A stretch of 64,000 bases of DNA from Macrostomum lignano. Taxonomy: Eukaryota. The notes under the pieces were generated by a model. The model ran no database searches, was not told the DNA's origin, and saw only the letters and a program-made list of their open reading frames with translations. Shown here piece by piece: positions 10,216-45,720 of the stretch (position 1 is its first letter; each line of letters begins with the position of its first letter). The stretch is from NCBI GenBank assembly GCA_002269645.1, contig NIVC01003000.1:62437-126436 (forward strand), written 5' to 3'. The translations under genes were made by a program, and so were the position numbers.

Positions 10216-10369
10216 CCCGCTGGAAAATGGTGCCTCAGCGCAAGCGTGATTTTGGCGTTTTTTAAGCAGAGAAGGCGAGTTTTGGGTGTGCAGAGCGTGC
10301 TTTGGGCTGGCTGAGTGTCAGTTAGGCGTAAAATTGGGGTAGTGGGTGGGGGGAGAGAAAAACGCCAAA

Positions 10370-18909: not shown

Positions 18910-19200
18910 CCCGAAGTACCGCGGCGTAAGCAATTACCGGGCAAGGCGTATTTCAAGCGTAGCACTGGCGTATGCCAGGCTGGCAACATGCGTATCTCAA
19001 GCGTACCGCGGGCGTAAGCTTAGCGGGCAAGGCGTATTTCAAGCGTACCGCGAGCGTTAACCCCACCCCAAACCCCAGCTGGTTAGGCGTGCGTGGGCGG
19101 TTTCTAGGCGTATTTTTGGCGGTTTCTGAAAATGTGCCTCAGTTTTACGCCTGTTTTACGCTTCTTTACGCACAACCTGCTATGTTTACGCCAAGTTTAC
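18910..19200. repeat. Right subterminal repeat array of the EnSpm element
   Basis: GGGCAAGGCGTATTTCAAGCGTA occurs twice, with GTACCGCG and GCGTAAGC repeats. Inverted relative to the left array. Confidence 0.75.
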
Positions 19201-19307
19201 GCGAAGCTCCCCCATCCTCCCCATAGCCGCGCACCCCCACCCACCCCTCCCCCGGAGCGTTTTTAAAGCGCATTTTAGGCGTATTTCGCGCTCCGTTTTC
19301 CAGCGGG

Positions 19308-20822: not shown

Positions 20823-21021
20823 CCTCTTCCGAACTGAAGAGGATTTTATTCATCTCCGTTCCGGTCGGATGGTAAGCAGCGCTTACCATAGACTATTCCT
20901 TTCAGCAGAATGGTTTGCTAAGTCTGTGGTCATTCCAGTCTGATAAAAAGACATTGACTATGAATAAGGCCCAAAACTAAGTCTCCATAAACTAACATAG
21001 AAAGTTTTACAGCTGAAGATT

Positions 21022-21451
21022 ATGGCTGCACTCATGGAAGAATTTGAAAGTTTTTCCGATTCGGACTTAATGACGTCCGATGAAGAAGAAGACATCATGT
21101 CAGAGGACGATTATGGTGAGTCGGACGGCCAGAGCACTGCCGAAGAGACGGAAGAGCTGTCTTGGCATTCTGTAGTTGCTGGGCATGACGTGCAAGCGAA
21201 TTTGCACGAGTTTCTAGGGACACCTGGACTGAATCCAGGAATTTGCGTACCTGGTGATGTTGAGCAGGCAACGTCCTTTTTTCTCGGTCTTTTTTTGTCC
21301 AATAGCCTTTTCGAAGACCTGGCAAAATGGACTAATCGAAGAGCCTGGGCGGCGATCCACTCTGTCAATGTCAACGACCTGCCTCGGAGTTTTGCGCAAT
21401 GGAGAGATTGCAGTGCGAATGAAGTAAAGAAAGTGTTAGGAATGTGCCTTT
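21022..21451 (+). pseudogene. piggyBac transposase N-terminal part (copy 1), interrupted by LINE B
   Basis: Acidic N-terminus and FFLGLFLSNSLFEDLAKWTNRRA...WRDCSANEVKKVLGMCL. Continues as YMG...EYWS at 38520. Confidence 0.85.
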
Positions 21452-21738
21452 GCACGCGAAGGCGTATTCAGCATGCCAGTGAAGTATGAGACAGACTAGG
21501 CCCATGGGCTAAGGTCTGCGATGCTTCACGCCTGCCCCTATCTTCAGCAGGTCAAGGCTGGTGGGAGGTCTGCACCCTCTATTTGCCTCTGGCAGCCGCA
21601 GACCCCCCCCCCACGCTGTCTCGCAAGTCGACCCAGGGTACTCGTCCCCGCGTGTGTTCAAGGCAGTCCCTAGGGCTGCTGGACAGACTGGGCTCCGGCG
21701 CTGGCGACCCTATCCAGTGGCTTCGGCCGAATTTGGGT
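21452..21738 (+). ncRNA. HDV-like ribozyme candidate (copy 1)
   Basis: Same sequence as 32609-32895. P1 21452-21458/21649-21655, L3 21639-21645, putative catalytic C21728. Confidence 0.62.
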
Positions 21739-24680
21739 ATGCGGGTCTGGCTCGCCAACCTGCAGGCCGTGGTACTGCTCAACGTACTCTCTAATGCCTA
21801 AGGTGTTGACCGTGCCGATGGGCTGGAAGGCCGGGGAGTAGTCCGGTCGCAAGCGGTCCCCCTCCTGGTGTCGGGCCAGCCTTGAGGGTGCTATTGGCCT
21901 ACTGCCCGGTCAGATGAAGCGGCCGGGTGGGTACCGCGCCCCTTTGAGGGTAGCCCACCAACCTTCTATCATGGCCTTCGAGCCGACTATGGATAAACAA
22001 GCTATTTCTAGGGATGGGGACCCTTCTAAACCCCAACCTCAGTCCGAAGGACCGGCCGGCCCTGCTGGCAGATCCCAACCGACTGATTCAACTGTGGCAA
22101 AGGAAGGACCGGCTGGCTCTGCTGGCAGATCCGACCAGAGCTACCAAACTCAAAATACCCTAAGACCTGCCAGCTCCGCTGGTGGATCTAAGGGAACCGC
22201 GAGCTCTGAGCCTAAAGGACCGGCCAAATCTGGCAGATCCGATGAAGCTCAGCGGGCTCGGCTTGAGCGCAAACGCGCTAAACAACGCGCCAAAAGGCAG
22301 GCCAAGAAGGGAGCTGCGGGGGCCAAAGCGGCGGCGTCCACCATGGATGCTGAAGCGACTGGAGTCCCAAGGCAACCAGGCGGGCCGGCCGGTGGAAGCT
22401 CCAGTAGTTCAGCGGCGGCGCTCCCTGGAGCTGCTGCCGCGGCTGCTGAGGCCGAAACCACGGCGCAACAAATGGCCACTGCCAACAAGGAGGTTCCTTC
22501 GGGAGCTACCTTTGCGGCGAAGGCCAAGGCCAAAATCCCGGGAGTGATCATCCAAGGTCGCGACCAGGACTGGACCACTGATCAGCTTCAAAAAGTGTGG
22601 AGTGCTGTTGACTCCTATCTGATTGAGCTGACTGTCGAGGAGGGAATCTCCATCGGCGTTGAGCGGATGGTGCTGCGAAGCACATTCGTTCTTATTGCTC
22701 CTAGCAGCGAGGAGGACGCTCGGCGGCTGCTCCAGCGGCTACCGACGGTCTCCTTGGATGCTGACCTTGGCGGAGCTCTTTTTCTTCGCGAGGGCCAGCG
22801 TCCAAAGACGATACCCTATGTGGTTTTCGTCCCTGCTAAGAGCACCGCAGCTGGACCAGACGTTATTCGCCGGGTCCTACTGCGTCTGAACCCCGACCTC
22901 CCTGCTAGTGGACTGGTGTATCACCGTAAAGTCCGCAGGGGGGAGACGGGCAACTCAATTGTCCTCGGCCTTTCCAGCACTTGGGCGAGTCGGTACCCTA
23001 ATGGATCCTCTTTCCAGCTGGGTGCCCTCAAGCTCAAGTTGCGCCGAGGAAAGTCTGCCAAAGGGAAGGCTACTGCCAACCCCGGCATCTCCGGCAAGAG
23101 CGGGGCGCAGTCTAAGGCCCAAGGAAAGGCGCAAGCCGATCCCAAAGCCAAAGCTGCATCTCGCCCCTCTGCTAGCAGCAGTTCGGCGACCGCGGTAACG
23201 GCTCCGGCCGAGCCCCGGGAACCAAACCTGCCAGTCGGAGAAGGAGTTGAGGACGAGGCCGGGTCTTCGGAATCCGAGCTCTCCTCGGCCACCTTGGTGG
23301 GGTCTGAAGGTAAAGATGCAGGTGAGGAAGCTTCCTCCATTCTGTCATCGGAGCCTGAGGAGTCTGCTGGGGGGCCGGTGGGGGTGAGGAGGCCATGGAC
23401 GTCGACCAACTCCCATCTCCCAGTCAAGCCCCAGCGGCCTGGGACGAGGACGATCTGTTGTCCAAGTCTCCTTGATGACCCTGGGCTCTAGCCAGATATT
23501 GCATTTAATACAGTATGACTAAGCTCCACGCTGCCAAAGGAGCGACATTCTGTCTGCAAATAAATTTACAGCATTGCGTATCTGCGTCAGTAAATCTGAT
23601 GAAGATTGCTGAGCTGTACAGGCCAGGCCTCATCCTGATCCAGGAACCCTGGATGCGCAACGGTAAGTTGCCCAACATTCCCTCTGGCTACTCTGATTTT
23701 TATGTGTGTGGCCCGGGGAACAGCCGCCCTAGAGCGGCTATCCTCGCTGCTAGCCATCTCCAGGCTTGGCTGAGGACTGATCTCTCTGATGGAGACCTTT
23801 GCGTCATCCAATCTAATCATTTCTCTCCGCGTACGTGTCTTGTTGCCTCGGTTTATATCCCAGGCGACAGAGACCCTGCTCCGAGAGTTTACTGCGCCTT
23901 GCGCAGTACTGCGAGTCCCAGAACGCTGAGCTGTGCTTAGGGGGCGACCTCAACGCGCACCACAAGCACTGGGGCAGCAAAGATACCAACACTAGAGGAG
24001 AGGAGCTTCTGGCCCTCATCTCTAACACAAACCTCATGCTCTGCAACCGCGGCAGCACTCCTACCTTTAATAATGGCAGATGGCCGAGGTCCTCGACGCC
24101 ACACTCGTTACCCCAAGACTCTTTGACAGAGTCAAGGAGTGGAGAGTCTGGTCTGAGGAGCCCTCCCTGTCTGACCACTGCTTTATTGCCTTTAATATCG
24201 CGGACACTAAAACCCAGTCTCCGATCACTTGGAGACGCAATATCCGCAACACTGATTGGGCGGCCTACAAGGCTGCCCTTGATCTGCACCTGCAGGAACT
24301 CACGGACTTACGTCCGATTGAGACCTGCGAGGATGTGGATCATATGGCTGAGACGCTGACAGGTTGCATTATTGCAGCCTACGAAGCGGCTTGTCCAGCT
24401 CGCGCCTACAGAGGCAAGACCTCGGCGCCGTGGTGGAACCCGGAGCTGGGGAAACTCAGGCGGAAGGCCAAAAGCCTTCATCGCCGTGCCATGAAGACCG
24501 GAAACCCGGAGGACATGGAGCTTTTCCGGCAAGCCTCCCGCAATTTCAAATCTGAAGTGCGCAAGGCCAAGGAATGTAAGTGGCGCCAATTCTGCAATGA
24601 ATTGGATCAAGACAGACCTACTTCTAGGCTTGTCAAGGCCCTTACAATGGACAAAATGTCCAAATTAGCCATGATCAAAA
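21452..24680 (+). mobile_element. LINE B, 5' half (duplicated copy 1: 5'UTR, ORF1 from 21971, endonuclease), cut at the duplication junction
   Basis: Near-identical to 32609-35838. Ends at ...ATGATCAAAA, joined directly to EnSpm transposase sequence. Confidence 0.92.
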
Positions 24681-27174
24681 ACTGACGGACCTGCTGCAGC
24701 TATTCGAAAGCACCCTGCCTCCTGGCTCCAAGATCCCCACGTCACCCTATCTACTGCGCAAGGCTCTCGGGGTGAACTGCACACACTACTGCCTGTCCTG
24801 CCTGGCTGAAGTCCCGGAGCAGGCCCCCGCCTGTCCATGCTGTGCTGCCGCTCTCACAGCTGACCTGCGCGGGACCTACTGGCAGTTGGACATACTGAGC
24901 CAAGTGAGACAGTTAATCGAAACGCAGGGACTGCTGCGCAAGGTGGTGTTTCCGGCTGATCAGTCGGCCACAGAGGAGTCGCTGAGTCGCAGTACCTCCA
25001 GCAGATACCAGTATTTCAAGGCCCGTATCGACGTGGCGGCGAAGCAGCATGTCAGCGGAACGGTGAATATTGACTCTTTCCAGGTCAGTCAACTTTATGG
25101 CGTTAAAATCGTTACACTCCGGGCTGCGGCCTATAGTTACAGTCCGATAGTGTGAGTAACAAAATTAATAATTCGTTGCCATTGTGCAGGTCTTTCAAAC
25201 AGCCACCTATTCAATTTGCCCGGTGTACCTGAGCATCAACGAGGTGCCGAACGACTGAAAGGAAAATTTTTAATCATCTGCGGGTTCTGGTGTGGACGCC
25301 GGAAACTGAATTGCACCGCCTTCCTCCGACTTCTTGTACAGCAGTTAAATATTCTGCAGTCGCGTGGCGTGGAGTACTCCACTGGTAAATATTTACTCCA
25401 ACATTGACGGATAAGACGGTCCAAAGAAAAGCATCCGCACTTGGGCTGCGTATTAAATTTTAGGTGGCGGCCCAGACGGACTTTCCGCCGGTCGTCTGTT
25501 CGTGACAATCCTGGTGCTGCTTCTGGATGCACCCCAGCGTGTCGAAGCAACCTGTCTGCAGCAGTTTAATGCGCTTTTCGGGTGTGACCACTGTTACATC
25601 CAGACGGCCCCTGTTCCCGGTGGTGGCGGCCGTTTCTTCCCTCCTGATGTCACGAATGTGCACCTCGCCGAAGCGGAACGGCATGGCTGCCAGAACGTAA
25701 CACGCCGGACTCTGGAGGACACGGTGCACCTCGCCGGTAATAAGGCACCGGCCGCCAGCAACCTGCTCGGCGTGAAGTCCGTTTCGCCTCTGATCGGACT
25801 GGTGCGACAGGGGTTCGACTACATTGTGGACTCGCCGTTCTGCTACTTGCACCAGACGCTGGGTGGCGTTAAGTACATCATCTGCCAGTTGTTCAGCCAG
25901 ATGGACAGAAAGCCAGACAAATATGCAGGTGAGATACAGCTGCGTCTATCGCTACAAATCCATCCCACTTACAGTACATATGAAGAATACGCAGTTGGAA
26001 TCCCCAATAACGGGCTTTCTTACAGTCAATCCTGATCTGCGGCACGACATTCCGACCGTGGACGTAATGACGGCCCAGATCCGGGTTCCAAGGGGCTCCA
26101 TTCAGCGACCTCCCCGCAGTCTCCGGGATCTTCATCACTTCCGCGGGCACGAGTTTGAAGCGTGGCTGCTGGCATACGGCCCTCTGGTGCTGCCCAATGT
26201 GTTGCATGGCGAGTATGAGCGATACCTGCAACACTTCCTGTTGCTGTCATCCTCCGTCTTTTGGCTGACTCTGGAGGGGGCGCCGATGACGGAAGTTGCA
26301 GGGACAAGGGCGAACCTGCGCCAGTTCGGCCATCAACTCCACGGCCTGTACTCGCGACGCGCCAGTACTTACAATATGCACAAGGTGCTGGAGAGTGTCG
26401 TTAAGGGTTTTTAAACAAAGTTGCAGACTTTGTTCTCACTGTCACCACACGGTCATTGAAATTTTTTCCACACAGGTTACTCATCACATGACCGACTATG
26501 CCGAAATGTTCGGCCCTATCCACCTGTCAGCGGCGCAATTCGAGGCGCATCATCATGCTCTGCTCTCCCAGCTGCACGGCAGCCGGAGCCTCGGCGCTGA
26601 GCTGCACGCCGTCATCCAGACGGAGGTCGCCTGTCGGGAACTGCGCGGTAGAGTCCCGCTTCCTCCTGCTGTCCCTGACAACCGGCAGGAAGTGGATGGG
26701 GTGGTTGTGACTCACCCATTGCGACGGACTGACGGGTGCTTCAGACACGCGTTGCTGCCGAACGGCTTCCGTATTGAGGCCTACTCACCTCGGTTGCGGG
26801 CGCGACGCACAGTCTCCAGCTTCGTCGGCATGTTTGCGGACAACTGGTCTCACCCGAGTGATCGCTCCGCACATGACTTCCTCTTTGCCCGTGTGGAAGC
26901 TATTATGCCAAGGGGCCCCCGCGTTATCCTCCGCATCGGACTGCTGCCGGTGGAGCCACCGCCTCCACAGCCAATCTTCAGTGGCGCTGCAAGCCAAGAC
27001 AATGCACCCGGGGGATGCTCCTTCCGGCATGTCCGCCGTCTGCGCTGCGACCCCTTTGGAGAACTTCCGGAGGCAGACATGCGTGAACTGGATGCGCGGC
27101 GCATCTTGGGCGCGTGTGTCCTCACAGACACGCACATCGTGCTCTTGTCGCACGCGCAGGCGTCCCATGCATGA
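24681..27174 (+). pseudogene. EnSpm transposase, 5'-truncated duplicate (one frameshift ~25245; last two exons intact)
   Basis: Duplicate of 13525-16018. ORFs 25824-26414 and 26296-27174 are open where copy 1 is frameshifted. Confidence 0.85.
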
Positions 27175-27732
27175 CAAATTGCGGTGCTGCATGACTGTCT
27201 CAATGTCTGTAAACTGACTGTTTTGTAATTAAAATTTGCCTCTGCCGCCGACTGTTTGAGTTATATGTCTTTTCTTTAAACACTCTTGGATGTCGAATCT
27301 TATAAAATCCGCATACAGAAATGAGAAATTTGAATGGTAATCTAGTATGTACACCTTTTTCTGCATTTGTCTATTGTACATATTTATATTTAATGGAAGC
27401 AAACACTGCTTTTCTTTAATATGCCGTGCATAATTTAATTAATTTTGCTCACATTTCTCCTTCGTTCAGCCAGCGATCCTGCGATGTCAGGTCCCGTTGT
27501 AAAAAACATCCGTTTCAGAGCGTCCGTTTTGCGACTTGTCTCGCTAGATTCGATGCACTGAATTGATTGCTCTGCTCTGTTCTGTTTGCTCTGTTCCACT
27601 GACTGACTCATTGTCTTAGTTGCTTTTGTGAAACTAAAATTCAGTACCCGCGTAACGTTCCATTTCCACATTTGTGACCATTCAATCCCCAGCTAAACTA
27701 CATCCTAGATACATATCAGTACGTTTCCATAT

Positions 27733-29446
27733 ATGTACAGCGACTGCGGTGTTTTGCCCCCCCCCTTGCAGACGCAGCAGACGAAGACCCAGCGCAGGCC
27801 GAGTCAGCGCGCAACAGCGCAGGCTTCTGCAGCAGCAGTAGCAGCAAGCACCAAGCCGAAGAAGGGCCGCAATGTTAACTCCCAGCCAAAAGTCGCTGTA
27901 CACGTGGAGAATCCCACTCCTAGCCAGCAACCCATTCTGTGCACATTCTGCGGGTCCTGGCCCCCCGAGTTCCATTGCGACCGCTGCCCCCCTGTAGGTC
28001 AGCATACGTGCGACGGCTGCAATACACAGTTCCATAATCACCCCGACCGACGCAGTCATCAGCCTGTGCGTCTACACGAAGGTAAGCTCAGAAGATATTG
28101 ATACCGGGTTAAACATTTGCGAAGTCCAAGTCCACACTGTCTCGGATGCACTACAAGTCCCCCTCTCCCACGCCCACACAATCCCTCCAGTAATCAATAC
28201 GGAGCCCGCTGCCCCGTCTGTCTCTGAAGGCGCGGAAAACAGTCAGCCTGCCGCGCTAGCGACAGTCAACGAAGAAGCTGCCGGCGAAGCTGACGACGCT
28301 CCCACAGGTCCGTGCCACCAGTGCAGCTTGCTGGAGGAGCAACTCGGCGAGGCCCGGACGACCGCCAACCGCCTTGACGCGACGATCGTCGAGCTGCGCG
28401 AACAGGTCGCCGAGGCCGCGAGTGCACACCATGCAGAGGTTGCATCTCTCCGGATGGAGATTGACCACCTGCGGAATGTGTTGGCGGACCGAGACGCCGA
28501 CCGACACCGTCTGGATTCTGACCTCCTGGCATTGCAGCGCAACGTCGTTGAGTGGGTGCAGTCCACTCGGCAGCACCTGCAGGGGGACCTGGCACCTCGA
28601 AGCGCGCTACAACGCCATCATTGTCTGGAAAATCGTCGTGATGAGGCTGCGGCAACCGAGTCTACGTTTTTGTCGCAGCTCTACTCCACGGAGGCGGTGT
28701 CGTTCTCTGCTGCCACTGCAGCCGCCACCGTGTCCGCCCAGCCCATGGCCGCCGCTGCTGCTGTGCATCAGCAGGACCTGGCTGCAGGCGGGGCGAGCGG
28801 CACGATGACGCCACTATTGGCCGGCTATAATATCTTGGTAAGGCGTCACACTGATTTTTTACAAAACCAAGTATTTTTACTTGCAATCACTTCCGTTATT
28901 CCGTGTATTTCATTACACTGTCAGGTTCCTGCCCTCACCGCCGTCGTCGTTCGGTCGGCACTAAGTGACTTCAAGCGGGACCCGGACGCTCACAATCGGA
29001 GCCGCCTGATCCGGAAGCTGCTGCAGGCCCTCTTCACCAAAGAGGAGCTGCAAATCAGCAGCTGGTCCGGCAAGACCCGCCGGCCCGGCGCTGCTAACAG
29101 CCCCGAGAAAATGATGCAGGCTCCGTCGGCTGCAAAGCTTGACGTCCTGGCGTCTTTCCTGTTGACGGAGGCCGGCATTGCTGACTGCAACGACGAGGTC
29201 CGGGCCGTGTTTAAGAACATGGCCGACAACAGTCGGCGGGGCTCGCGCCCGAAGGCTGCTCGTCCTGCCCCTGGAGGTGGCGATACGCAAGCCGAAAAGC
29301 GCCCCCGCCATGCAGAGTCTGCTATCACACTGCAATCACGGCCGGCGAATGCGGCGAATGCGTCTAATCCTGAACCGGCGGCGAATAGGGGATCTGCACC
29401 AGTGGTTAATGATGGCTCTGAACCGGCGGCGACTGCGTCTGCCTAA
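27733..29446 (+). CDS. B-box/coiled-coil/BEN gene, duplicate copy
   Basis: Translations identical to 16577-18290. Confidence 0.75.
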
Positions 29447-30463
29447 AAACGTATAATCTGTGTCAAAATAACATCACAAAAATGGTTACACGTTTTCGTC
29501 TTCATGCTGGTTTAAAAGCGCTCTTGCAAGCTAGCTTCAACTCATCCACTGTTTTTTCAGTTGCAAGTTACTAGTGATTCCCCACAAAATTTGTCCCGGC
29601 GAAAAGTTCATTATTGCTGCACCGGGATATCTGTTGAGTTTGACTCAACAGCGCCATGCTTTTATTGTTCTTTAGTACTTTGCAATGCATTACAAAAAAC
29701 AAAAAAATTACATTGTGGCTCTCATTACATTTCCAGCTCCACTGTTTTTGCTGCTCCAGCTCCACAGCATTTTATTATGTTCCAGTTCAAGATTTACGTT
29801 TACAACTTTCTTTGCTGTTTGTATTACTTTCTTGTTACAGCTACGACTTTTATGCAGCTTGTCTTTTTGCTCAGTCATTTGCCAGCGAATTAATGTTAAT
29901 GTTAATGTTAAAAAATAATATTTAATTAAATACATACGTTCCTAGTTGTGTTATAAATTAAAAAACCAATTAAGGTAACTAGCTAAAAATTTTCAGCCAT
30001 TATCTCTTACACTTTTGATTATTTTCTACGTACGCTCGTACGGGACGCAGCTAGTACAGTGTATTCCCGAAGTACCGCGGCGTAAGCAATTACCGGGCAA
30101 GGCGTATTTCAAGCGTAGCACTGGCGTATGCCAGGCTGGCAACATGCGTATCTCAAGCGTACCGCGGGCGTAAGCTTAGCGGGCAAGGCGTATTTCAAGC
30201 GTACCGCGAGCGTTAACCCCACCCCAAACCCCAGCTGGTTAGGCGTGCGTGGGCGGTTTCTAGGCGTATTTTTGGCGGTTTCTGAAAATGTGCCTCAGTT
30301 TTACGCCTGTTTTACGCTTCTTTACGCACAACCTGCTATGTTTACGCCAAGTTTACGCGAAGCTCCCCCATCCTCCCCATAGCCGCGCACCCCCACCCAC
30401 CCCTCCCCCGGAGCGTTTTTAAAGCGCATTTTAGGCGTATTTCGCGCTCCGTTTTCCAGCGGG

Positions 30464-31979
30464 GTCAGCAGGCCTGTCGCTGCTTCCAGGTCTCGCAGGC
30501 TGAGGTCGCCATGCGGCCGGAGGTTCCGCTTTCTGAAGGCAAACTGCTTCTGGATTTGGACACCCGCGTCAAGCAGACGACGGGTGGTTTTCATTGCCTC
30601 CCCTCTAACAAAGAGGTCGAGGGGGGGAATGTCCAAGAAGGAGTTCATGCCAGCGAAGGGCGTAGAGGGAGCCGCGCTCATGATAGCTCGACAAGCGCGG
30701 CCTTGCACCCTATTTAAAGCCTCAAGAACCCCTTTCACCTCTAGGGCACTGTTCCAAATGAAGCCGGCGAAGGAGATGGCCGGTCTAACAATGGCAGTGT
30801 AAATCCACCAGAGGCGGCGGGGGTGAGGCCCCAGGTAGCACCGAAAGCTCTGCGGATCTGCGCGAGAGTCGCGAGAGCTTTGCGGGCTTTCGTTTGGACG
30901 TGCGGGGTCCAGCTCAACCTGTGGTCGAGGGTGACGCCCAGACATCTAGTTTGTTTCTCCATGGCAACAGGTTTGCCATAGAGGGAGAGCGGTTCGATCC
31001 TCCAGTTTCGGCGGCTGGTGAACATGATAGCCACGGTTTTAGACTCAGAGAACCTGAGGCCGCAGCTATGTGCCCAGCGCTCGGCACGGTGAATGAAGGC
31101 TTGAAGGAGGTCCCTGAGGACCGCGGGCGATGGTCCAGCCACAGTGGCGGTAACATCGTCCGCGTAGCCGACCTTCTGAACAGGGTCCGGATGCGGGCTG
31201 CAAAGCAGCTCGTGGTCCGCCCTTCTGGACTTCCACGGAGCGTGAGTGTCCCAGGAGGTGCGAGGTGGCAGTACGATGGGAGACTATGTACATGATCCAG
31301 CGGGTGAGGTGCTCGTGCGTGCCCCGGGATTCCAGGGCTCGCTTAAAGGCTTCAAAGAGCACATTGTTGAAAGCACCATCAATGTCGAGGAAAAGCGACA
31401 GCGCGTATCCACTGCCAAGCACGGCGCGCTCCAGCTTGTCGACAATGGCGTGCAGCGCACTTTCGATGGAACGTCCAGGACGAAAGGCGTGCTGATTAGG
31501 GGAGAGCGGGGAGTTCCTCAGCTCAACGAGGAGAAGGCGCCAGAGCACCAGCCGTTCCATCAGTTTGAGGAAGAAGGACGTCAGACTGATAGGGCGGTAA
31601 GCTTTGGCGGAGTGATAGTCTCCCTTTCCTGGCTTGGGTATGAAGACTACCGTAGCCTCTTGCCAGGCTTTTGGCACATAACCGAGGGTAATGCTGGCCT
31701 TGAAGAGGTTGCAGAGGAGGCCGAGACACCTGTCATTTTTAACTGCCTCATGAAGGAAGGCAGGATAAATGTTGTCAGGACCCGGGGACTTGAAAGGAGA
31801 GAAGGATTTTGCGGCGCGAGCCGTCCTCTCTCTAGTAATGATGGTCGAAGCCAGGATCTGTCCGCCCGGAGAGTGGTCCGGTGGGCCTAGCTGCGGTGCG
31901 GCACGTGGGAAAGAGCTGGTGAGCATAATGTCCAGCGATTCCCCAGGGTTCTCAGCGAGCCGGCCGTCCGGTCTTTTAA
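30464..31979 (-). mobile_element. LINE A RT segment, duplicate copy
   Basis: Duplicate of 19308-20822. Confidence 0.9.
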
Positions 31980-32178
31980 CCTCTTCCGAACTGAAGAGGA
32001 TTTTATTCATCTCCGTTCCGGTCGGATGGTAAGCAGCGCTTACCATAGACTATTCCTTTCAGCAGAATGGTTTGCTAAGTCTGTGGTCATTCCAGTCTGA
32101 TAAAAAGACATTGACTATGAATAAGGCCCAAAACTAAGTCTCCATAAACTAACATAGAAAGTTTTACAGCTGAAGATT

Positions 32179-32608
32179 ATGGCTGCACTCATGGAAGAAT
32201 TTGAAAGTTTTTCCGATTCGGACTTAATGACGTCCGATGAAGAAGAAGACATCATGTCAGAGGACGATTATGGTGAGTCGGACGGCCAGAGCACTGCCGA
32301 AGAGACGGAAGAGCTGTCTTGGCATTCTGTAGTTGCTGGGCATGACGTGCAAGCGAATTTGCACGAGTTTCTAGGGACACCTGGACTGAATCCAGGAATT
32401 TGCGTACCTGGTGATGTTGAGCAGGCAACGTCCTTTTTTCTCGGTCTTTTTTTGTCCAATAGCCTTTTCGAAGACCTGGCAAAATGGACTAATCGAAGAG
32501 CCTGGGCGGCGATCCACTCTGTCAATGTCAACGACCTGCCTCGGAGTTTTGCGCAATGGAGAGATTGCAGTGCGAATGAAGTAAAGAAAGTGTTAGGAAT
32601 GTGCCTTT
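32179..32608 (+). pseudogene. piggyBac transposase N-terminal part (copy 2)
   Basis: Identical translation to 21022-21451. Ends in TSD GTGCCTTT (32601-32608). Confidence 0.85.
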
Positions 32609-32895
32609 GCACGCGAAGGCGTATTCAGCATGCCAGTGAAGTATGAGACAGACTAGGCCCATGGGCTAAGGTCTGCGATGCTTCACGCCTGCCCCTATCT
32701 TCAGCAGGTCAAGGCTGGTGGGAGGTCTGCACCCTCTATTTGCCTCTGGCAGCCGCAGACCCCCCCCCCACGCTGTCTCGCAAGTCGACCCAGGGTACTC
32801 GTCCCCGCGTGTGTTCAAGGCAGTCCCTAGGGCTGCTGGACAGACTGGGCTCCGGCGCTGGCGACCCTATCCAGTGGCTTCGGCCGAATTTGGGT
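32609..32895 (+). ncRNA. HDV-like (nested double-pseudoknot) self-cleaving ribozyme candidate at the LINE B 5' end
   Basis: P1 GCACGCG(32609-15)/CGCGUGU(32806-12) with a G1.U wobble. P2 ACCCA(32788-92)/UGGGU(32891-95). P3 GGG/CCC. L3 UACUCGU. P1.1 A-U and C-G with GU(32813-14). J4/2 CGAA at 32885-88. Folded by hand. Confidence 0.65.
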
Positions 32896-33126
32896 ATGCG
32901 GGTCTGGCTCGCCAACCTGCAGGCCGTGGTACTGCTCAACGTACTCTCTAATGCCTAAGGTGTTGACCGTGCCGATGGGCTGGAAGGCCGGGGAGTAGTC
33001 CGGTCGCAAGCGGTCCCCCTCCTGGTGTCGGGCCAGCCTTGAGGGTGCTATTGGCCTACTGCCCGGTCAGGTGGAGCGGCCGGGTGGGTACCGCGCCCCT
33101 TTGAGGGTAGCCCACCAACCTTTATC

Positions 33127-34632
33127 ATGGCCTTCGAGCCGACTATGGATAAACAAGCTATTTCTAGGGACGGGGACCCTTCTAAACCCCAACCTCAGTC
33201 CGAAGGACCGGCCGGCCCTGCTGGCAGATCCCAACCGACTGATTCAACTGTGGCAAAGGAAGGACCGGCTGGCTCTGCTGGCAGATCCGACCAGAGCTAC
33301 CAAACTCAAAATACCCTAAGACCTGCCAGCTCCGCTGGTGGATCTAAGGGAACCGCGAGCTCTGAGCCTAAAGGACCGGCCAAATCTGGCAGATCCGATG
33401 AAGCTCAGCGGGCTCGGCTTGAGCGCAAACGCGCTAAACAACGCGCCAAAAGGCAGGCCAAGAAGGGAGCTGCGGGGGCCAAAGCGGCGGCGTCCACCAT
33501 GGATGCTGAAGCGACTGGAGTCCCAAGGCAACCAGGCGGGCCGGCCGGTGGAAGCTCCAGTAGTTCAGCGGCGGCGCTCCCTGGAGCTGCTGCCGCGGCT
33601 GCTGAGGCCGAAACCACGGCGCAACAAATGGCCACTGCCAACAAGGAGGTTCCTTCGGGAGCTACCTTTGCGGCGAAGGCCAAGGCCAAAATCCCGGGAG
33701 TGATCATCCAAGGTCGCGACCAGGACTGGACCACTGATCAGCTTCAAAAAGTGTGGAGTGCTGTTGACTCCTATCTGATTGAGCTGACTGTCGAGGAGGG
33801 AATCTCCATCGGCGTTGAGCGGATGGTGCTGCGAAGCACATTCGTTCTTATTGCTCCTAGCAGCGAGGAGGACGCTCGGCGGCTGCTCCAGCGGCTACCG
33901 ACGGTCTCCTTGGATGCTGACCTTGGCGGAGCTCTTTTTCTTCGCGAGGGCCAGCGTCCAAAGACGATACCCTATGTGGTTTTCGTCCCTGCTAAGAGCA
34001 CCGCAGCTGGACCAGACGTTATTCGCCGGGTCCTACTGCGTCTGAACCCCGACCTCCCTGCTAGTGGACTGGTGTATCACCGTAAAGTCCGCAGGGGGGA
34101 GACGGGCAACTCAATTGTCCTCGGCCTTTCCAGCACTTGGGCGAGTCGGTACCCTAATGGATCCTCTTTCCAGCTGGGTGCCCTCAAGCTCAAGTTGCGC
34201 CGAGGAAAGTCTGCCAAAGGGAAGGCTACTGCCAACCCCGGCATCTCCGGCAAGAGCGGGGCGCAGTCTAAGGCCCAAGGAAAGGCGCAAGCCGATCCCA
34301 AAGCCAAAGCTGCATCTCGCCCCTCTGCTAGCAGCAGTTCGGCGACCGCGGTAACGGCTCCGGCCGAGCCCCGGGAACCAAACCTGCCAGTCGGAGAAGG
34401 AGTTGAGGACGAGGCCGGGTCTTCGGAATCCGAGCTCTCCTCGGCCACCTTGGTGGGGTCTGAAGGTAAAGATGCAGGTGAGGAAGCTTCCTCCATCCTG
34501 TCATCGGAGCCTGAGGACTCTGCTGGGGGGGCCGGTGGGGGTGAGGAGGCCATGGACGTCGACCAACTCCCATCTCCCAGTCAAGCCCCAGCGGCCTGGG
34601 ACGAGGACGATCTGTTGTCCAAGTCTCCTTGA
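33127..34632 (+). CDS. LINE B ORF1 (501 aa): low-complexity termini, central DUF4780-like domain, no CCHC knuckles
   Basis: Intact ORF. RPKTIPYVVFVP...RVLLRLNPDL...SIVLGL...FQLGALKLKLR resembles the DUF4780 of Loa/Lian ORF1 proteins. Confidence 0.8.
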   Translation: MAFEPTMDKQAISRDGDPSKPQPQSEGPAGPAGRSQPTDSTVAKEGPAGSAGRSDQSYQTQNTLRPASSAGGSKGTASSEPKGPAKSGRSDEAQRARLERKRAKQRAKRQAKKGAAGAKAAASTMDAEATGVPRQPGGPAGGSSSSSAAALPGAAAAAAEAETTAQQMATANKEVPSGATFAAKAKAKIPGVIIQGRDQDWTTDQLQKVWSAVDSYLIELTVEEGISIGVERMVLRSTFVLIAPSSEEDARRLLQRLPTVSLDADLGGALFLREGQRPKTIPYVVFVPAKSTAAGPDVIRRVLLRLNPDLPASGLVYHRKVRRGETGNSIVLGLSSTWASRYPNGSSFQLGALKLKLRRGKSAKGKATANPGISGKSGAQSKAQGKAQADPKAKAASRPSASSSSATAVTAPAEPREPNLPVGEGVEDEAGSSESELSSATLVGSEGKDAGEEASSILSSEPEDSAGGAGGGEEAMDVDQLPSPSQAPAAWDEDDLLSKSP

Positions 34633-34671
34633 TGGCCCTGGGCTCTAGCCAGATATTGCATTTAATACAGT

Positions 34672-37600
34672 ATGACTAAGCTCCACGCTGCCAAAGGAGC
34701 GACATTCTGTCTGCAAATAAATTTACAGCATTGCGTATCTGCGTCAGTAAATCTGATGAAGATTGCTGAGCTGTACAGGCCAGGCCTCATCCTGATCCAG
34801 GAACCCTGGATGCGCAACGGTAAGTTGCCCAACATTCCCTCTGGCTACTCTGATTTTTATGTGTGTGGCCCGGGGAACAGCCGCCCTAGAGCGGCTATCC
34901 TCGCTGCTAGCCATCTCCAGGCTTGGCTGAGGACTGATCTCTCTGATGGAGACCTTTGCGTCATCCAATCTAATCATTTCTCTCCGCGTACGTGTCTTGT
35001 TGCCTCGGTTTATATCCCAGGCGACAGAGACCCTGCTCCGAGAGTTTACTGCGCCTTGCGCAGTACTGCGAGTCCCAGAACGCTGAGCTGTGCTTAGGGG
35101 GCGACCTCAACGCGCACCACAAGCACTGGGGCAGCAAAGATACCAACACTAGAGGAGAGGAGCTTCTGGCCCTCATCTCTAACACAAACCTCATGCTCTG
35201 CAACCGCGGCAGCACTCCTACCTTTAATAATGGCAGATGGACCGAGGTCCTCGACGCCACACTCGTTACCCCAAGACTCTTTGACAGAGTCAAGGAGTGG
35301 AGAGTCTGGTCTGAGGAGCCCTCCCTGTCTGACCACTGCTTTATCGCCTTTAATATCGCGGACACTAAAACCCAGTCTCCGATCACTTGGAGACGCAATA
35401 TCCGCAACACTGATTGGGCGGCCTACAAGGCTGCCCTTGATCTGCACCTGCAGGAACTCACGGACTTACGTCCGATTGAGACCTGCGAGGATGTGGATCA
35501 TATGGCTGAGACGCTGACAGGTTGCATTATTGCAGCCTACGAAGCGGCTTGTCCTGCTCGCGCCTACAGAGGCAAGACCTCGGCGCCGTGGTGGAACCCG
35601 GAGCTGGGGAAACTCAGGCGGAAGGCCAAAAGCCTTCATCGCCGTGCCATGAAGACCGGAAACCCGGAGGACATGGAGCTTTTCCGGCAAGCCTCCCGCA
35701 ATTTCAAATCTGAAGTGCGCAAGGCCAAGGAATGTAAGTGGCGCCAATTCTGCAATGAATTGGATCAAGACAGACCTACTTCTAGGCTTGTCAAGGCCCT
35801 TACAATGGACAAAATGTCCAAATTAGCCATGATCAAAAAAGATGATGGCTCTCTTACTAAAGACCCTGAAGAAGTGCTTCAGCATATGCTTAGCACATTC
35901 TTCCCGAGGGTACCTACTGCTAGACCGGAGCCCAACCATTCGATGGATGGAGCCACCCTAGCGGCGGGCATTGTCACTGAAGACCTAATCGCTCGTGCGG
36001 TCAGAACCTTCAAACCCTTCAAATCTCCTGGACCTGATGGTATCTACCCTGTTCTCCTTCGTGAAGCAGCCAAGATACCCTCGTTCCTGAGACTCACCCG
36101 CAATCTTATGCGGGCCTCTATCCAGCTGGGATACGTTCCCAAAAGCTGGACTGAAGCTCGAGTAGTCTTTATTCCCAAACCTGGGAAGGGTGACTACCAA
36201 AGCGTCAAGGCCTTCCGGCCAATTAGCTTAACGTCAGCAATGCTTAAGCTCACTGAGAGGCTTATTCTCTGGCGGCTGCTCTCCTGCGAGCTGACAGCGA
36301 TGCCCCTCAGCAATAATCAGCACGCCTTCCGTACCGGGAGGTCGACTGACAGCGCCCTGCATGCGATTGTCGAAAAGATTGAACGGGCGGTACTGGGTGA
36401 CGGTTACGCCCTGGCTCTCTTTCTTGACATTGTTGGCGCCTTCGACAACGTTATCTTTGAAGCGTTTCAGAGGGCCCTTCAAAATCGCAAAGCTCATGCT
36501 ACCCTCATACGGTGGATCATGTACATGATCTCCAACCGTACGGTCACTGCCCAACTTCTTGGGCAAACTGCCTCCACCAGAGTCTGTAAGGGTGGACCCC
36601 AAGGCGGAGTCCTCACCCCGACGCTCTGGAACCTGGTCATGGACGCTCTTCTGAGTGACTCCCGACCTGACCCCGTCTTCAAAGTCGGGTATGCTGATGA
36701 CGTCACGGCCATTGTGGCAGGACCGTCTCCCAGCACGCTCAGGGATCTGATGCAGAGCTTTATCCGCAAAGCAGAATCCTGGGCCAATGACAATGGTTTG
36801 GAACTCTCTGAGCCCAAAACCGTTGCCATTATGTTTACCAGCAGACTACGCTGGAACATACGTCCTCTGCAGCTCTACGGCAGAGATATTGCCTTCGCGC
36901 ACCAGACCAGATGTCTCGGGGTCACACTTGACCACCGGCTCAACTGGTCCTTCCACGTGAAAGCAAAAGCTAAGCGTGCCTCAGCCATCCTGGCCCAGCT
37001 CCGACGAGCACTTGGCACTTCTTGGGGTCTATCCCCAAAGCGGCTTTGGTGGATCTATACTTCCGTAGTTAGACCTGCCATTACGTACGCCTCTGTTGTC
37101 TGGGTTAGCGCTACCCAGGTCAAAAGCCATGCAGACCTGCTCAACACGATCCAAGGCAGAGCGTGTAGGCTCATCTGCAACGCCACCAGGTCCACGCCCT
37201 TTGCTGGCATGGGGGCCTTTCTTAATCTTCCGCCTCTTGACCTCTTCATCAGGGGTGAGGCGGCTAGAACGACGCGGCGTCTAATTGATGCCGGCGTCAA
37301 ATTCATTTACATGAGAGCACCTGCTAAGCGGAACCTTGTCCCGCATAGCGATCTGTGCCTCAACTTTCTCAACGAGTGTCAGGCCAATCGCGTCTTCACC
37401 GATGGCATTGCCTCAACGCTCAACCTGAGACAGCGCTACTCCGTAGCTATCGACTCGCGCGATAACATCAATGACCATTGGAACCCTGGTGAGCTTCATT
37501 GCTACACCGACGGTTCTAAGCAGTCAGCCAACACCGGCTTTGGTGTTGGAATCTTTCTGAACGGGAGGGTCATCGCTACCCACGCTCAATACACTGGGGT

Positions 37601-38411
37601 CAACTCCAGTGTTTTCCAAAATGAAGTTCTGGCCATCAGCTCCTGCACTGCAGAGCTTCTCGCCACTGGCGTTACTGGTAAGAACATCATTTTCCATTCG
37701 GACAGCCAAGCTGCCTTGCACGCCATCAGTGGCTGCAGCACCAACTCTGCTACAGTCCTTGACTGTATCAAACTCCTCAATGTGTTGGGTTCCGCCAACA
37801 AAATTACCCTTAAGTGGGTTCCGGGGCATGTGGGGATCCGAGGAAATGAGTTGGCTGACACCCTTGCAAAAGTTGGTGCCTCCGGCTCCTCTCTCGGCCC
37901 CGAACCTCTTGTCCCGATTCCTGGCTGTGTCATCGACTCGCGCATCAAAGCGTGGATCAGGACTCAGCACCGCTCGACTTGGGCGAACCGCACGAACTGC
38001 AGGCAATCCAGAGGCGCTGTCCCTCAGCCCTCTCACCAGCTCCGGAAGCTCCTCTTGCGCCTCTCGCGCAGAGACATCCGGGCTGCCACCATGACCCTCT
38101 CTGGTCACGGCTGCTTCTCCAGGCACCAGTACCTGCAGGGCAACGCCACCAACGCCACCTGTAGTTTCTGCAACTCAGGTGACGAAACCGCTGAGCATTT
38201 CGTCAGCATCTGTCCCGCCTTCACGCGGGCCAGACTCACTTACCTCGGGCCACACACATCTATTACTGAAGCGTGCAAACCCGAAAACTTTAATCAGCTC
38301 ATGCGCTACCTTCGGGCCACCCGCAGGGCTGAACTCTCCTTTCCAGAGAGCACCATAGCTGCTGGCGACACTGGGGGACCTCCCTGGGCGGCGCCAACCC
38401 TCCGTCCATAG
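34672..38411 (+). CDS. LINE B ORF2: APE endonuclease + RT + RNase H + C-terminal CCHC; one 1-bp deletion at ~35040
   Basis: QINLQH, LIQEPW, GGDLNAHH..WG, TFNNG, SDHC, KSPGPDG, RPISL, LDIVGAFD, PQGGVL, YADD, YTDGS, FQNE, SDSQAA, WVPGH.GI.GNE.AD and CSFC...ETAEHFVSIC. Confidence 0.95.
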
Positions 38412-38519
38412 CGACGCGTCGGCCGTTCAGGGACTAGCGGAATGGGCGCCCGCGCCTTCCCGCTGTGTCCCCTCCGGGACAGCCCTGCAGCTAAGTCTAA
38501 GTCAAAGTCAAGTGCCTTT

Positions 38520-39402
38520 ACATGGGTTCCAATAAAAAGGCCGAAATGAACGAGTACTGGAGCACAGACAGTTACTACAGTACGCCGTACTTTCAAGCAC
38601 CTCAAGCTCTTTCTAGGGACCGCTTTAAGCAGCTACTTGGTCTGCTCCGTTTCTACGATTGCGCTGAGGATCCGATTGTCAACGATCCTCTCTTTAAGAT
38701 CCGTCCGTTGCTGCAGGCTTTGAAAGAGGCTTGTATTAATGTGTACAGGCCCGAGGAGGATGTGAGCGTGGACCTAACGACGTCGCCTTCATGCGCAAAG
38801 ACGGGGTGCTGGCTGTCAAGATCGTTGAACGAAAGGAGAGTGGCCTGAAGACTCTGTATTTGCTGGACACGAAAGAGGCGGCTGAGAGGGTTCAAACCAG
38901 ACGCGTGGTTCGTGGAGGAGCAGAAACAGTGGTGCAGAAGAGCAGGTCAGTTCTCACCTACAATCGGTGCATGGGTGGTGTTGACAGAATGGACAGTCAT
39001 CTACAGCATCATCTGCCAGGGAGAAAAACTACAAAGTGGTTTTTGAAGCTCGGCTTGCATCTTTTTCTTCAAATGATTCGCAACGCTTGGATTGTGTACA
39101 GCCGGTGCGGTGGAGAGAAGACGTTCGCCAAGTTTCTTGAGGCCAGCATTCGGGAGCTGGTGGAGCGTACCGGAACGAGCAGGAAGCGCCCGGCCGCTGG
39201 CATCCAGGCCGCTCCAGGTGGCCCAGTCAGTCCGCACTTTCCAACGAAGATTGTGGCGCGGGACAGTCAGCCAAGACCAACAAAGCGCTGTCGTGTCTGC
39301 TACAGAGCTGGAAGCAGCAAGCGCACGATCTACTGCTGCCCTGAGTGTCCAGGGGAACCGGGGCTCTGCTTGGAAGCCTGCTTTCAGCAGTGGCATGCCT
39401 GA
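38520..39402 (+). pseudogene. piggyBac transposase C-terminal part with an internal deletion of the catalytic core
   Basis: EYWS...LSRDRFKQLL...DPLFKIRPLL...VSVD jumps out of frame (~38775) to VAFMRKD...YNRCMGGVDRMD...KWFLKL...CRVC...CPEC..LC...CF..WH. The region normally holding the second catalytic D is absent. Confidence 0.88.
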
Positions 39403-39867: not shown

Positions 39868-40052
39868 TTTTGAAGAGCTGCTCAATCTGATTTTCCTAAC
39901 TTCAATTCCATGGCAAGCTCTGCTTACCATAGCCGACCGGAACGGCCTGTGGCCAGCCATAGACTTATAGAGACTTTCCTCACTCGCGAAAGTTTAGGCT
40001 TGGATTGGAGTGTCAGCGTGGTAAGCACTGCTTACCATCAGACTGCTGGCGG

Positions 40053-40200
40053 TTAATAACTGAGAGCTTTGACATTTTGTCGAGGGTGAGAGCCTTAACT
40101 ACGCGTGAAGTAGGGCGGGTGCCTTCTAACTCCGCGCAGTATTGGCGCCATTTGTCGGACTTGGCTTTCCTGGTTTCACGCTTAAAGTGTGAAAGATGGA
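40053..40200 (-). mobile_element. LINE A 5'-most fragment (5'-truncated copy)
   Basis: HFKRETRKAKSDKWRQYCAELEGTRPTSRVVKALTLDKMSKLSVI is homologous to LINE B NFKSEVRKAKECKWRQFC... and joins the RT segment across TTAA. Confidence 0.88.
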
Positions 40201-43452: not shown

Positions 43453-43676
43453 TGTCATGTTATGTTTATTACATTATTATGACTCATCAATTTGTTAGGC
43501 AAGTCAGTACCAGTCTCTATTAAAGTGAACAATATGGCTACGAAATCAAGTATTGTGCTATGCTTCCACACTCAACGCTGTTAATTTATTTACTCTGTAT
43601 TTACAATTCCAAAAAGTCATAAAAGAATAAGAATCGAGATGTTTCTGCAGAAGGCCTCGGCAACAAGAATGCATCT

Positions 43677-44110
43677 TAGAATGCACTGTAGAAGAGATTC
43701 TTAGAATGCACTGTAGAAGAGATTCTTAGAATGCATTGTAGAAGGGATTCTTAGAATACAAAGTAGAAGAGATTCTTAGAATAGAAAAGTAGAAGACATT
43801 CTTAGAATAGAAAGTAGAAGAGATTCTTAGAATACAAAGTAGAAGAGATTCTTTGAATGCAAAGTAGAAGACATTCTTAGAATACAAAGTAGAATTCATT
43901 TTAAGAATACAAAGTAGAAGACATTCTTCGAATAGAAAGTAGAAGAGATTCTTAGAATACAAAGTAGAAGAGATTCTTATAATACAAAGTAGAAGATATT
44001 CTTCGAATAGAAAGTAGAAAATATTCTTAGAATACAAAGTAGAAGAGATTCTTAGAATACAAAGTAGAAGAGATTCTTAGAATGCAAAAGTAGAAGAGAT
44101 TCTTAGAATA
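43677..44110 (+). repeat. 25-bp minisatellite (TTAGAATACAAAGTAGAAGAGATTC), ~17 copies, between ~95-bp direct repeats
   Basis: Units seen directly. Flanking direct repeats at 43477-43572 and 44167-44269. Confidence 0.9.
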
Positions 44111-44479
44111 GATTTATATATTCAACATTAACACCAAGTCAATTGAGTTAAAGTCACACGAAGCAGTTATGACATAATCAATTTCTTAGGCAAGTCAGTA
44201 CCAGTCTCTATTAAAGTTAGCAATATGGTTACGCAATATAAATCAAGTGTTGTGCTATGCTTCCACACTGCGTTTTCAATACTGTGACGCAATTCAATTC
44301 AGTGTCAAATTCAGCCAGTACACAGACGATAAATAAAAAGCCTATTGTGATGATGCAATCGATTTCAGAATCAGAATTCAACCAGTCAGTTTTTTCTCTA
44401 GCATTCTTACAATGCATTTCAAGTCGAAAAGTTTGCTTGACCTTTGCAAAAAAGCATGTTTTTCGAATATTTAATCCCT

Positions 44480-44670: not shown

Positions 44671-45139
44671 AAATGACACCAAGTGGTTTTGATTTTGGCC
44701 CAACAGTAAACCATTAATTTCCCTTTCCATTAATCAAAAATTACTTTTTCTCATTCTGAAAAAAAAATTGCCATGAATCAAAACTTTCACCAGCAAAAAA
44801 GTTTCCTTAATCAGCCCAAAACCCGTTTTCAATCAGCAAATAGTGCTTATCCTTTCAAGCACAAACTCTTAGAGCATATCGTCATTGGCCTGGGCATATT
44901 TTGGTCCGCAGCAGGAGCTCAATATGCAAATCCCTGACGGCCTTTGACACCCCTCTTTATTAGCCTAACTCAAAGAATCAAACCTTTAATAAATACGCTG
45001 GTATTTCCTATCAGCAGAATTCAGCATCACTTGTGTGTACTATTTCATTATCTGAATTAAATGAGCTACTTGAGCTGTACTACTTGACGATCTGACAATC
45101 GAACAACAAACCTAACCCCCTCCCCCCAAAAATTCAGCC

Positions 45140-45720
45140 ATCCCCCATGAGCCTTGACATCTCAGCAATTCCCCCAGTAGGCCTTGACATCTCAGAAATT
45201 CCCTCAGTAAGCATCGACATCGCAGCAATTAAACTCGAGCCTTGACATCTACGCAATTCTCTCAGGCCAGTAAGCCTTGAAATCTACGCAATTCTCCCAG
45301 GCCAGTAAGCCTTGACATCTCAGCAATTCCCCGAGTAAGCCTTGAAATCTCAGAAATTCCCACAGTAAGCCTTGAAATCTCAGCAATTCCCCTAGTAAGC
45401 CTTGAAATCTCAGAAATTCCCACAGTAAGCCTTGACATCTCAGCAATTACCCCAGTAAGCCTCGACATCTCAGCAATTACCCCAGTAAGCCTCGACATCT
45501 CAGCAATCCCCCAGTAAGCCTTGACATCTCAGCAATCCCCCAGTAAGCCTTGACATCTCAGCAATTCCTCTAAGAAGCTTTGACATCTCAAGAATTTTCC
45601 CAGTAAGCCTTGACATCTGAGCAATTCCCATGAGCCTTGAAATCTCAGAAATTACCCCAAAAAAGCCATGATATCTCAGCAATTCAACCAATAAGCCTTG
45701 ACATCTCAGCAATTCCTGAG
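45140..45720 (+). repeat. ~30-bp minisatellite (AGTAAGCCTTGACATCTCAGCAATTCCCCC-like)
   Basis: Many tandem units, with a more degenerate continuation at 46250-46430. Confidence 0.9.

Follow-up and report, generated by a model that had tools for sequence, protein, structure and literature searches.

A probable HDV-like ribozyme at the 5′ end of a two-ORF LINE from the flatworm Macrostomum lignano

R2, R4, Dong, baggins, RTE and L1Tc elements carry ribozymes at their 5′ ends, and these cut the RNA at the first base of the element or close to it (PMC3774820, PMC6765202, PMC3185411). In those of R2 elements, P4 is highly variable and the length of J1/2 lies between 23 and more than 700 nt (PMC3774820), and a structured J1/2 combined with a long P2 speeds up cleavage (PMC4908430). 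The non-LTR elements of Schistosoma have so far been tied to twister variants instead (PMC8501958), and our literature search retrieved no report linking Macrostomum LINEs with a ribozyme. Here we analysed a stretch of 64,000 nt from the free-living flatworm Macrostomum lignano (the window), in which the first ~250 bases of a LINE, named LINE B, very probably fold as an HDV-like ribozyme that cuts at the first base of the element. This is a fresh example of a known mechanism and not a new mechanism, and it would add a family of two-ORF LINEs of the APE-RT-RNase H type, from a free-living flatworm, to those with HDV-like 5′-end processing.

Compared with the genomic HDV ribozyme, the LINE B sequence presented the same order of elements (P1, P2, P3/L3, P1′, P1.1, NCAA, P4, J4/2 and P2′), the G·U wobble at the cleavage site and an L3 of the form U..UCG.U with the equivalents of U20 and G25, while it differed in the length of J1/2 (168 nt against 2-3 nt in HDV), in P1.1 (AC/GU against CC/GG) and, in the preferred model, in J4/2 (GGACAGAC against G-CGAA). 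Among the retrotransposon ribozymes, the drz-Agam-2 family of Anopheles gambiae is linked to RTE retrotransposons and Baggins1 belongs to the LOA clade; placement in the LOA/I-type clades, the hosts of Baggins, would call for APE, RT and RNase H domains in ORF2 together with a phylogenetic position in the clade, and the ORF2 of LINE B has the APE-RT-RNase H domain order. Like that of LINE B, the drz-Agam-2 ribozyme occupies the 5′ end of its non-LTR element and has a 'pinch' architecture, in which a large structured J1/2 (P1.2), short linkers and an extended P2 speed up cleavage (PMC4908430). Its host is an RTE element, whereas LINE B is an APE-RT-RNase H LINE with an ORF1, and its P2 has 12 bp, as compared with the 4+4 bp interrupted by an internal loop that we model for LINE B, which also differs from it in its multi-hairpin J1/2 of ~168 nt and in a P1.1 made of A-U and C-G.

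The R2 ribozymes (those of Drosophila, Bombyx, planarian R2 and others) resemble LINE B in that an HDV-like fold within the 5′ UTR processes the co-transcript, with a long and variable J1/2, a P1 of 6-7 bp and a P2 of at least 5 bp (PMC3774820). However, R2 integrates in a site-specific way in the 28S rDNA, possesses a restriction-like endonuclease and one ORF, and is often cleaved upstream, within the 28S, while LINE B is of the APE type, has two ORFs, lies here in a transposon gene and has its predicted cleavage site exactly at its own first base. Baggins1 and L1Tc/ingi are, like LINE B, APE-type LINEs in which the cleavage site falls on the element's 5′ end (PMC3774820, PMC3185411, PMC6765202). 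L1Tc also encodes an RNase H, as does LINE B, but its ribozyme is compact, comprising the first 77 nt and overlapping an internal promoter. Since each of the unusual features of the LINE B ribozyme has a published precedent, they can be considered ordinary for the class.

LINE B occupies positions 32609-38511 of the + strand, and its ORF1 and ORF2 showed 87-98% identity to M. lignano UniRef entries. The element is flanked on both sides by an 8-bp target-site duplication (TSD), GTGCCTTT (32601-08 and 38512-19), and excising 32609-38511 together with one copy of GTGCCTTT restored the ORF of a piggyBac-type transposase. In this reconstruction of the empty site, the flanks (32179-32608 and 38520 onwards) joined in a single reading frame, and the Pfam DDE_Tnp_1_7 match (residues 89-228) spanned the rejoined junction at residue ~143. 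Because of the TSD and the restoration of the ORF, G32609 can be assigned as the first base of LINE B without any RNA model, in agreement with the initial annotation of this DNA, which had placed the 5′ end there. The joined transposase ORF contained stops or frameshifts further downstream, after about residue 250, and the interrupted gene (32179-32608 and 38520-39400) carries LINE B in sense orientation. The features of the element and of the predicted ribozyme are collected in Table 1.

Table 1. Positions in the window of the features of LINE B and of its putative ribozyme
Feature	Position	Strand	Details
5′ target-site duplication	32601-32608	+	GTGCCTTT; second copy at 38512-38519
P1, 5′ strand	32609-32615	+	GCACGCG; predicted cleavage site 5′ of G32609
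J1/2	32616-32783	+	AAG linker, structured peripheral (P1.2-like) domain, AA linker
P2, 5′ strand	32784-32792	+	Distal GUCG 32784-87, bulged A32788, proximal CCCA 32789-92
P3/L3	32793-32805	+	GGG 32793-95 and CCC 32803-05 around L3 UACUCGU 32796-32802
P1, 3′ strand	32806-32812	+	CGCGUGU; 7/7 pairs with 32609-32615
P1.1, 3′ strand	32813-32814	+	GU; C32798-G32813, A32797-U32814
J1.1/4 and P4 hairpin	32815-32837	+	UCAA 32815-18, then P4 (RNAfold)
J4/2	32838-32845	+	GGACAGAC (preferred model); candidate catalytic C32841 in C-A-G-A
P2, 3′ strand	32846-32856	+	Proximal UGGG 32846-49, loop CUC, distal CGGC 32853-56
Downstream UUCG-capped hairpin	32863-32904	+	Constrained MFE; holds C32884/C32885 GAAUU and UGGGU 32891-95
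LINE B ORF1	33127-34632	+	501 aa in the copy at 32609
LINE B ORF2	34708-38411	+	APE, RT and RNase H, CCHC at the C terminus; one apparent frameshift near 35040
LINE B 3′ end	38490-38519	+	GCUAAGUCUAAGUCAAAGUCAA repeats to 38511, then 3′ TSD 38512-38519
Ribozyme copy in tandem duplicate	21452-21699	+	Identical to the copy at 32609

The 3′ end of LINE B is made up of GCUAAGUC-like repeats, and the alignment of ORF2 presented invariant C-terminal Cys/His residues, consistent with the CCHC motif. The apparent ORF2 frameshift lies in the APE domain, and because of it this copy of LINE B may be dead; two apparent frameshifts were also present in the APE domain of the duplicate copy (23883-24086). 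These frameshifts could be due to genuine decay or to indel errors of a long-read assembly. Homology searches with ORF1, either as a single sequence or as a two-sequence profile, recovered three chimeric M. lignano UniRef models only and no DNA, and exact look-ups of the window ORF1 and of these three proteins gave no match.

HDV-like ribozymes are characterized by a P1 of 6-7 bp that starts at the cleavage nucleotide, usually a G, and whose 3′ strand abuts P3, by a 3-bp P3 with an L3 of 7-8 nt that holds the equivalents of U20 and G25, and by a P1.1 in which L3 positions 2-3 form one or two pairs with the nucleotides lying directly 3′ of P1. Self-scission in this class depends on Mg2+ and yields a 2′,3′-cyclic phosphate and a 5′-OH at nucleotide +1. 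In LINE B all seven pairs of P1 can form, the first of them a wobble (G32609·U32812), and the 3′ strand directly follows the P3/L3 hairpin, in which U1 and G6 of L3 are the equivalents of HDV U20 and G25. The 5′ strand of P1.1 consists of A32797 and C32798, inside L3, which are complementary to the GU that follows P1, resulting in two pairs of unusual composition, one of them being A-U. The initial annotation had read these elements from the letters alone, that is, a GCACGCG/CGCGUGU P1 with G·U at position 1, a GGG-UACUCGU-CCC hairpin directly before its 3′ strand and a P1.1 of A-U and C-G, and all three are present in the sequence.

To determine the significance of these pairings, the 5′ region was shuffled 20,000 times at the dinucleotide level with nt 1-7 fixed. 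A 7-bp partner for P1 alone occurred in 21% of the shuffles, a partner directly after a 3-bp stem with a 7-8-nt loop in 1.1%, and this arrangement with a 2-bp P1.1 in 0.115%, while adding U1 and G6 of L3 left 2 of the 20,000 (0.01%); the full core with P2 and C-N-R-A was found in 0 of 20,000. The nearest relative of LINE B, L001, gave 4/20,000 in the same anchored test. Scanning both strands of the whole window with a core-only descriptor retrieved 32609 and its duplicate only. A permissive descriptor of the full HDV motif (J1/2 of 400 nt at most and P2 of 4 bp or more) matched ~70 times per strand in the window, so the full motif alone proves nothing, and with relaxed L3 descriptors the matches in the relatives were as numerous on the minus strand as on the plus strand. 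The informative descriptors were the strict core, or the core plus P2/GCNRN confined to the 5′ region.

L001, a Logan contig, contains a related LINE in full length; its ORF2 is 57% identical to that of LINE B, and its 3′ terminus carries the GCUAAGUCAAAGU motif, as in LINE B. The contig begins with P1 (GCCUGC), and its positions 176-196 read GGG-UCUCCGU-CCC-GCAGGC-AG. With respect to the window, P1 of L001 presented double compensatory changes at position 3 (A-U to C-G) and position 4 (C-G to U-A), and the G·U at position 1 becomes G-C. Both pairs of P1.1 were also changed compensatorily (A-U/C-G to C-G/U-A, CU/AG in L001), and P3 and the U and G of L3 were the same in both sequences. Covariation across related LINE 5′ ends, which had been proposed with the initial annotation as a check on the fold, was thus observed in P1 and P1.1 and, as described below, in P2 and J1/2, and rests on two sequences because a single close relative was available.

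In the J1/2 region (168 nt), RNAfold predicted closing stems at 32619-21/32779-81 and 32626-29/32772-75, two main hairpins at 32636-32686 and ~32724-32762, and a smaller one in between (~32687-32709); the hairpins fold as the initial annotation described. The J1/2 regions of the window and L001 are homologous, ~165 nt long and connected to P1 and P2 by linkers of 2-4 nt. RNAalifold of the two sequences yielded 34 pairs, 7 of them with compensatory changes, and the loop GGCCCAWGGGCUAAGG was invariant between them; a contig scan with this conserved loop gave chance bacterial matches only.

The window also contains 5′-truncated fragments of a second, L001-like LINE family, all on the minus strand, at 30415-31980, with a duplicate at 19259-20823, and at 9543-10244, 1-147 and 40031-40186. 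These fragments were nearer to L001 than to LINE B (~62-79% versus 52-66% amino-acid identity, depending on the fragment), and therefore both ribozyme-bearing families seem to be present in the M. lignano genome.

Among more distant relatives, we examined 80 metagenomic loci encoding ORF2 relatives, with best-segment identities of ~28-43%. In three further families (relatives 33-36% identical), the coding strand presented an HDV-like core located about 2.0-2.2 kb upstream of the match to ORF2: L015/L016, with GGCCCUC ... ACC-UCCACGUU-GGU-GAGGGCU-GG and a short J1/2; L006/L042, with GGGGGGG ... ACC-UCUACGU-GGU-CCCCCCC-AG and a J1/2 of ~140 nt; and L037/L021, with GGGGGGG ... ACC-GCCUAGU-GGU-CCCCCCC-GG and a J1/2 of ~114 nt. 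The U and G pattern of L3 was also found in L001, L006 and L015, while L037/L021 keep the G and have an L3 that starts with G. In L002, a relative with 35% identity, no core was found with the core-only descriptor. Judging from these metagenomic relatives, the same solution appears to be shared by three or more further lineages of the LINE group.

As expected for a retrotransposon ribozyme, the predicted cleavage site was the first nucleotide of the element, so that P1 lies at the element boundary in three lineages. This coincidence is exact in the window and in L015/L016, which have unrelated 5′ flanks and diverge exactly at G+1, and holds to within one base in L037/L021, where unrelated flanks diverge at the start of the G-run and L021 has one G fewer.

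Downstream of P1.1, the four relatives shared a layout of (N)NAA, a simple P4 hairpin, a single G, C-U-R-N and a P2 of 7-10 bp, which is also the layout of the genomic HDV ribozyme, and L015, L037 and L006 have the canonical J4/2 G-C-U-R-A. With MAFFT, the 3′ domains of the four families were not alignable.

Covariance models gave results that depended on the family. L015 gave an end-to-end alignment to Rfam RF02682 that began at the same +1 and scored 25.7 bits, below the gathering score of 44, and a model built from L037/L021 found L006 at an E value of 1e-7. The R1/R2 models (built from L037, L021 and L006) recovered one another and did not recover L001, L015 or the window, and the R3 model, built from L001 alone, scored 5.1 bits on the window and was mis-paired. 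The Rfam search at the gathering score returned no ribozyme family in the whole window, and at E<=10 it returned no HDV-family match (e.g. RF02682) in 32400-33200, as expected from a J1/2 of 168 nt. Hence, neither the curated nor the custom models recognized the window copy. On the minus strand of another locus, L003, two ACC-UCGGUAA-GGU-CCCCUCC copies lie 267 nt apart (1365-1436 and 1632-1703) and weakly resemble the ribozyme model of L006/L037 (11.5-12.2 bits at E values of ~1.4-2); they may be the HDV-like core of another element in the opposite orientation.

The 3′ domain was folded with P3 forced and with L3, P1′ and P1.1 blocked (constrained MFE). In the window this resulted in a composite P2, formed by CCCA 32789-92/UGGG 32846-49 and GUCG 32784-87/CGGC 32853-56 with a 1x3 internal loop between them, and L001 folded with the same layout (170-175/232-237, C169 opposite CAA, and GCCG 165-168/CGGC 241-244). 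The 3′ strand of P2 aligned with UCUGAG-CAA-CGGC of L001, with one compensatory pair (C-G to U-A) and, in addition, one G·U to C-G change, and the composite P2 would explain the conserved alignment block CUGRGC..CGGCGC. P4 was a plain hairpin, GGCAGUCC-CUA-GGGCUGCU (32819-26/32830-37), and C32841 became the candidate catalytic C because of its position between P4 and the conserved 3′ strand of P2.

In the HDV-like class the outer pseudoknot is closed by a P2 of at least ~5 bp, for which the window offers two candidate pairings, the 4+4 bp composite or one of 5 bp. The candidates for the J4/2 cytosine are C32841 (CAGA) or C32884/C32885 (CCGA/CGAA), neither of which follows a single G as in the relatives; C32841 is preceded by GGA (3 nt), where all the relatives have the single G. 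In L001 the fourth nucleotide of J4/2 is C, the usual one being A. The proximal P2 of the compact model has 4 bp, and 5 bp only if G32793 is taken from P3; by chance, the 4-bp proximal P2 was found in 9.6% of the shuffles and the 5-bp CCCAG/CUGGG register in 2.1%. The folding and the comparison with L001 suggest that P2 is probably formed by 32784-92 and 32846-56, with P4 as a simple hairpin and C32841 as the candidate catalytic C.

In the initial annotation the 3′ half was drawn with a P2 formed by ACCCA 32788-92 and UGGGU 32891-95, CGAAUU with C32885 as J4/2 and a branched P4. In this model C32885 (or C32884) would be the catalytic base, and a multi-hairpin insert of ~70 nt would stand in place of P4. 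ACCCA is complementary to UGGGU, with CGAAUU directly before the latter, and the 5-bp P2 would adjoin a full 3-bp P3. We kept this pairing as a rival because a P2 of this type with a CNRA match occurred in 1.6% of the shuffles and because its CGAA is identical to the J4/2 of genomic HDV. L015 (CUAAAU) and L037 (CUAAAC) also have a C-N-R-A that is separated from P2 by a 2-nt spacer, and some R2 ribozymes have no regular P4 (PMC3774820). However, in L001, where the GGCYRAA..GGGUA segment is kept (~245-285), the homologous GGCUAAACCGGGUA has no partner next to P3, and in the window the constrained MFE sequestered CGAA and UGGGU in the stable UUCG-capped hairpin 32863-32904. In addition, this P2 is not extendable, while the relatives have one of 7-10 bp; no convincing closing stem was found for a branched P4, while in 4/4 relatives P4 is a simple hairpin with G-C-U-R-N directly after it; and the conserved CGGCGC block is left without explanation.

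The conservation in L001 and the constrained folding thus favour 32784-92/32846-56, and the 3′ half with C32885 is probably wrong; as a reading of the ribozyme we regard it as unlikely, while still giving it some weight. An HDV-like ribozyme at the first base of the LINE, which was the central proposal of that annotation, stands with regard to the core, the boundary and the relatives, and probably does not stand with regard to the drawing of P2, P4 and J4/2. As a separate observation, an upstream ACCC could pair with GGGU in both the window and L001, which makes a pseudoknot possible.

On balance, we favour the compact anatomy, in which LINE B 32609-~32856 would encode a self-cleaving ribozyme with the nested double pseudoknot of the HDV-like class. 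From this model we infer that the RNA cleaves itself, which C is catalytic and what the ribozyme does for the element. LINE B would be transcribed within a longer read-through RNA, which is plausible at this locus because the copy is in sense orientation inside the transposase gene. P1 (nt 1-7) would then pair with the strand directly 3′ of the P3/L3 hairpin, P1.1 and P2 would close the two pseudoknots, and a cytosine of J4/2, likely C32841, would catalyse scission directly 5′ of G32609, releasing co-transcriptionally a LINE RNA that starts at its own first nucleotide. The proposed start of the cleaved RNA would explain why full-length copies abut the TSD at G32609.

Such processing would support the view that many LINEs with no demonstrated promoter depend on read-through transcription followed by self-cleavage, and it predicts uncapped LINE RNAs with a 5′-OH. 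It would also provide exact 5′ ends for the annotation of LINE B-type elements and natural examples of a long P2 plus structured J1/2 for ribozyme engineering.

The region could also be a conserved RNA structure of the 5′ UTR, HDV-like by descent or by resemblance, that is without cleavage activity in this family or this copy and acts as a protein-binding platform, an IRES-like element or a means of 5′-end recognition, the precise 5′ end being set by an internal promoter. Binding of R2 protein and IRES-like activity have also been reported for R2 ribozyme regions (PMC6765202), and such a role would agree with the non-canonical J4/2 of the window and L001, with a 3′ half that finds no support from any covariance model, and with a J1/2 domain and a downstream hairpin conserved beyond catalytic need. 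On the other hand, covariation specifically preserved P1 and P1.1, the pseudoknot helices of the catalytic core, and the U and G of L3 were retained. Moreover, in every lineage the start of P1 coincides with the element's first base or lies no more than one base from it, which is the signature of ends defined by cleavage, and the J4/2 of L015, L037 and L006 is canonical, making a structure that does not cleave improbable in our judgement.

A broader reading, which we consider improbable enough to be offered as speculation, is that the ribozyme is one module of a larger conserved 5′-UTR machine in widespread, undescribed invertebrate APE-RT-RNase H LINEs. Within it, the J1/2 domain and the UUCG-capped hairpin could be platforms for translation initiation or for binding of element proteins, and the mutually exclusive partners of CCCA/ACCCA (32846-49 and 32891-95) could constitute a conformational switch gating self-cleavage. 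Finally, a chance resemblance in a GC-rich 5′ UTR, as might be supposed from the many matches of the permissive long-J1/2 descriptor and from the frequency with which nt 1-7 find a 7-bp partner in shuffles, is very improbable given the rarity of the anchored core, the independent similar result for L001, the compensatory changes and the recurrence of this architecture in three further lineages of LINEs.

Positions 13525-24681 of the window are repeated in tandem as 24681-35839, a block of 11.16 kb with 99.85% identity, and both blocks carry the same upstream flank and the same TSD as LINE B. The initial annotation had pointed to a second copy of the ribozyme at 21452-21738; this copy is present, and the two ribozyme regions are identical in sequence, but as an independent insertion it does not hold, since it lies within the duplication and has its flank and TSD in common with the first. 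The 11.16-kb repeat could be a true tandem duplication or an assembly artefact. At its junction, ORF2 of LINE B (element position ~3229) is fused to the sequence at 13525. The LINE parts of the two blocks differ by 8 mismatches and 3 gap openings across ~3.23 kb. The duplicate has an ATG at 21914 (21914-21919) that aligns with the ORF1 start codon of L001, while the other copy has a GTG at 33070 (33070-33075), its ORF1 starting 57 nt further downstream. In the AT-rich region downstream, tandem-repeat arrays are present at 43635-44160 (period of ~25 nt) and 45130-45716 (~30-35 nt).
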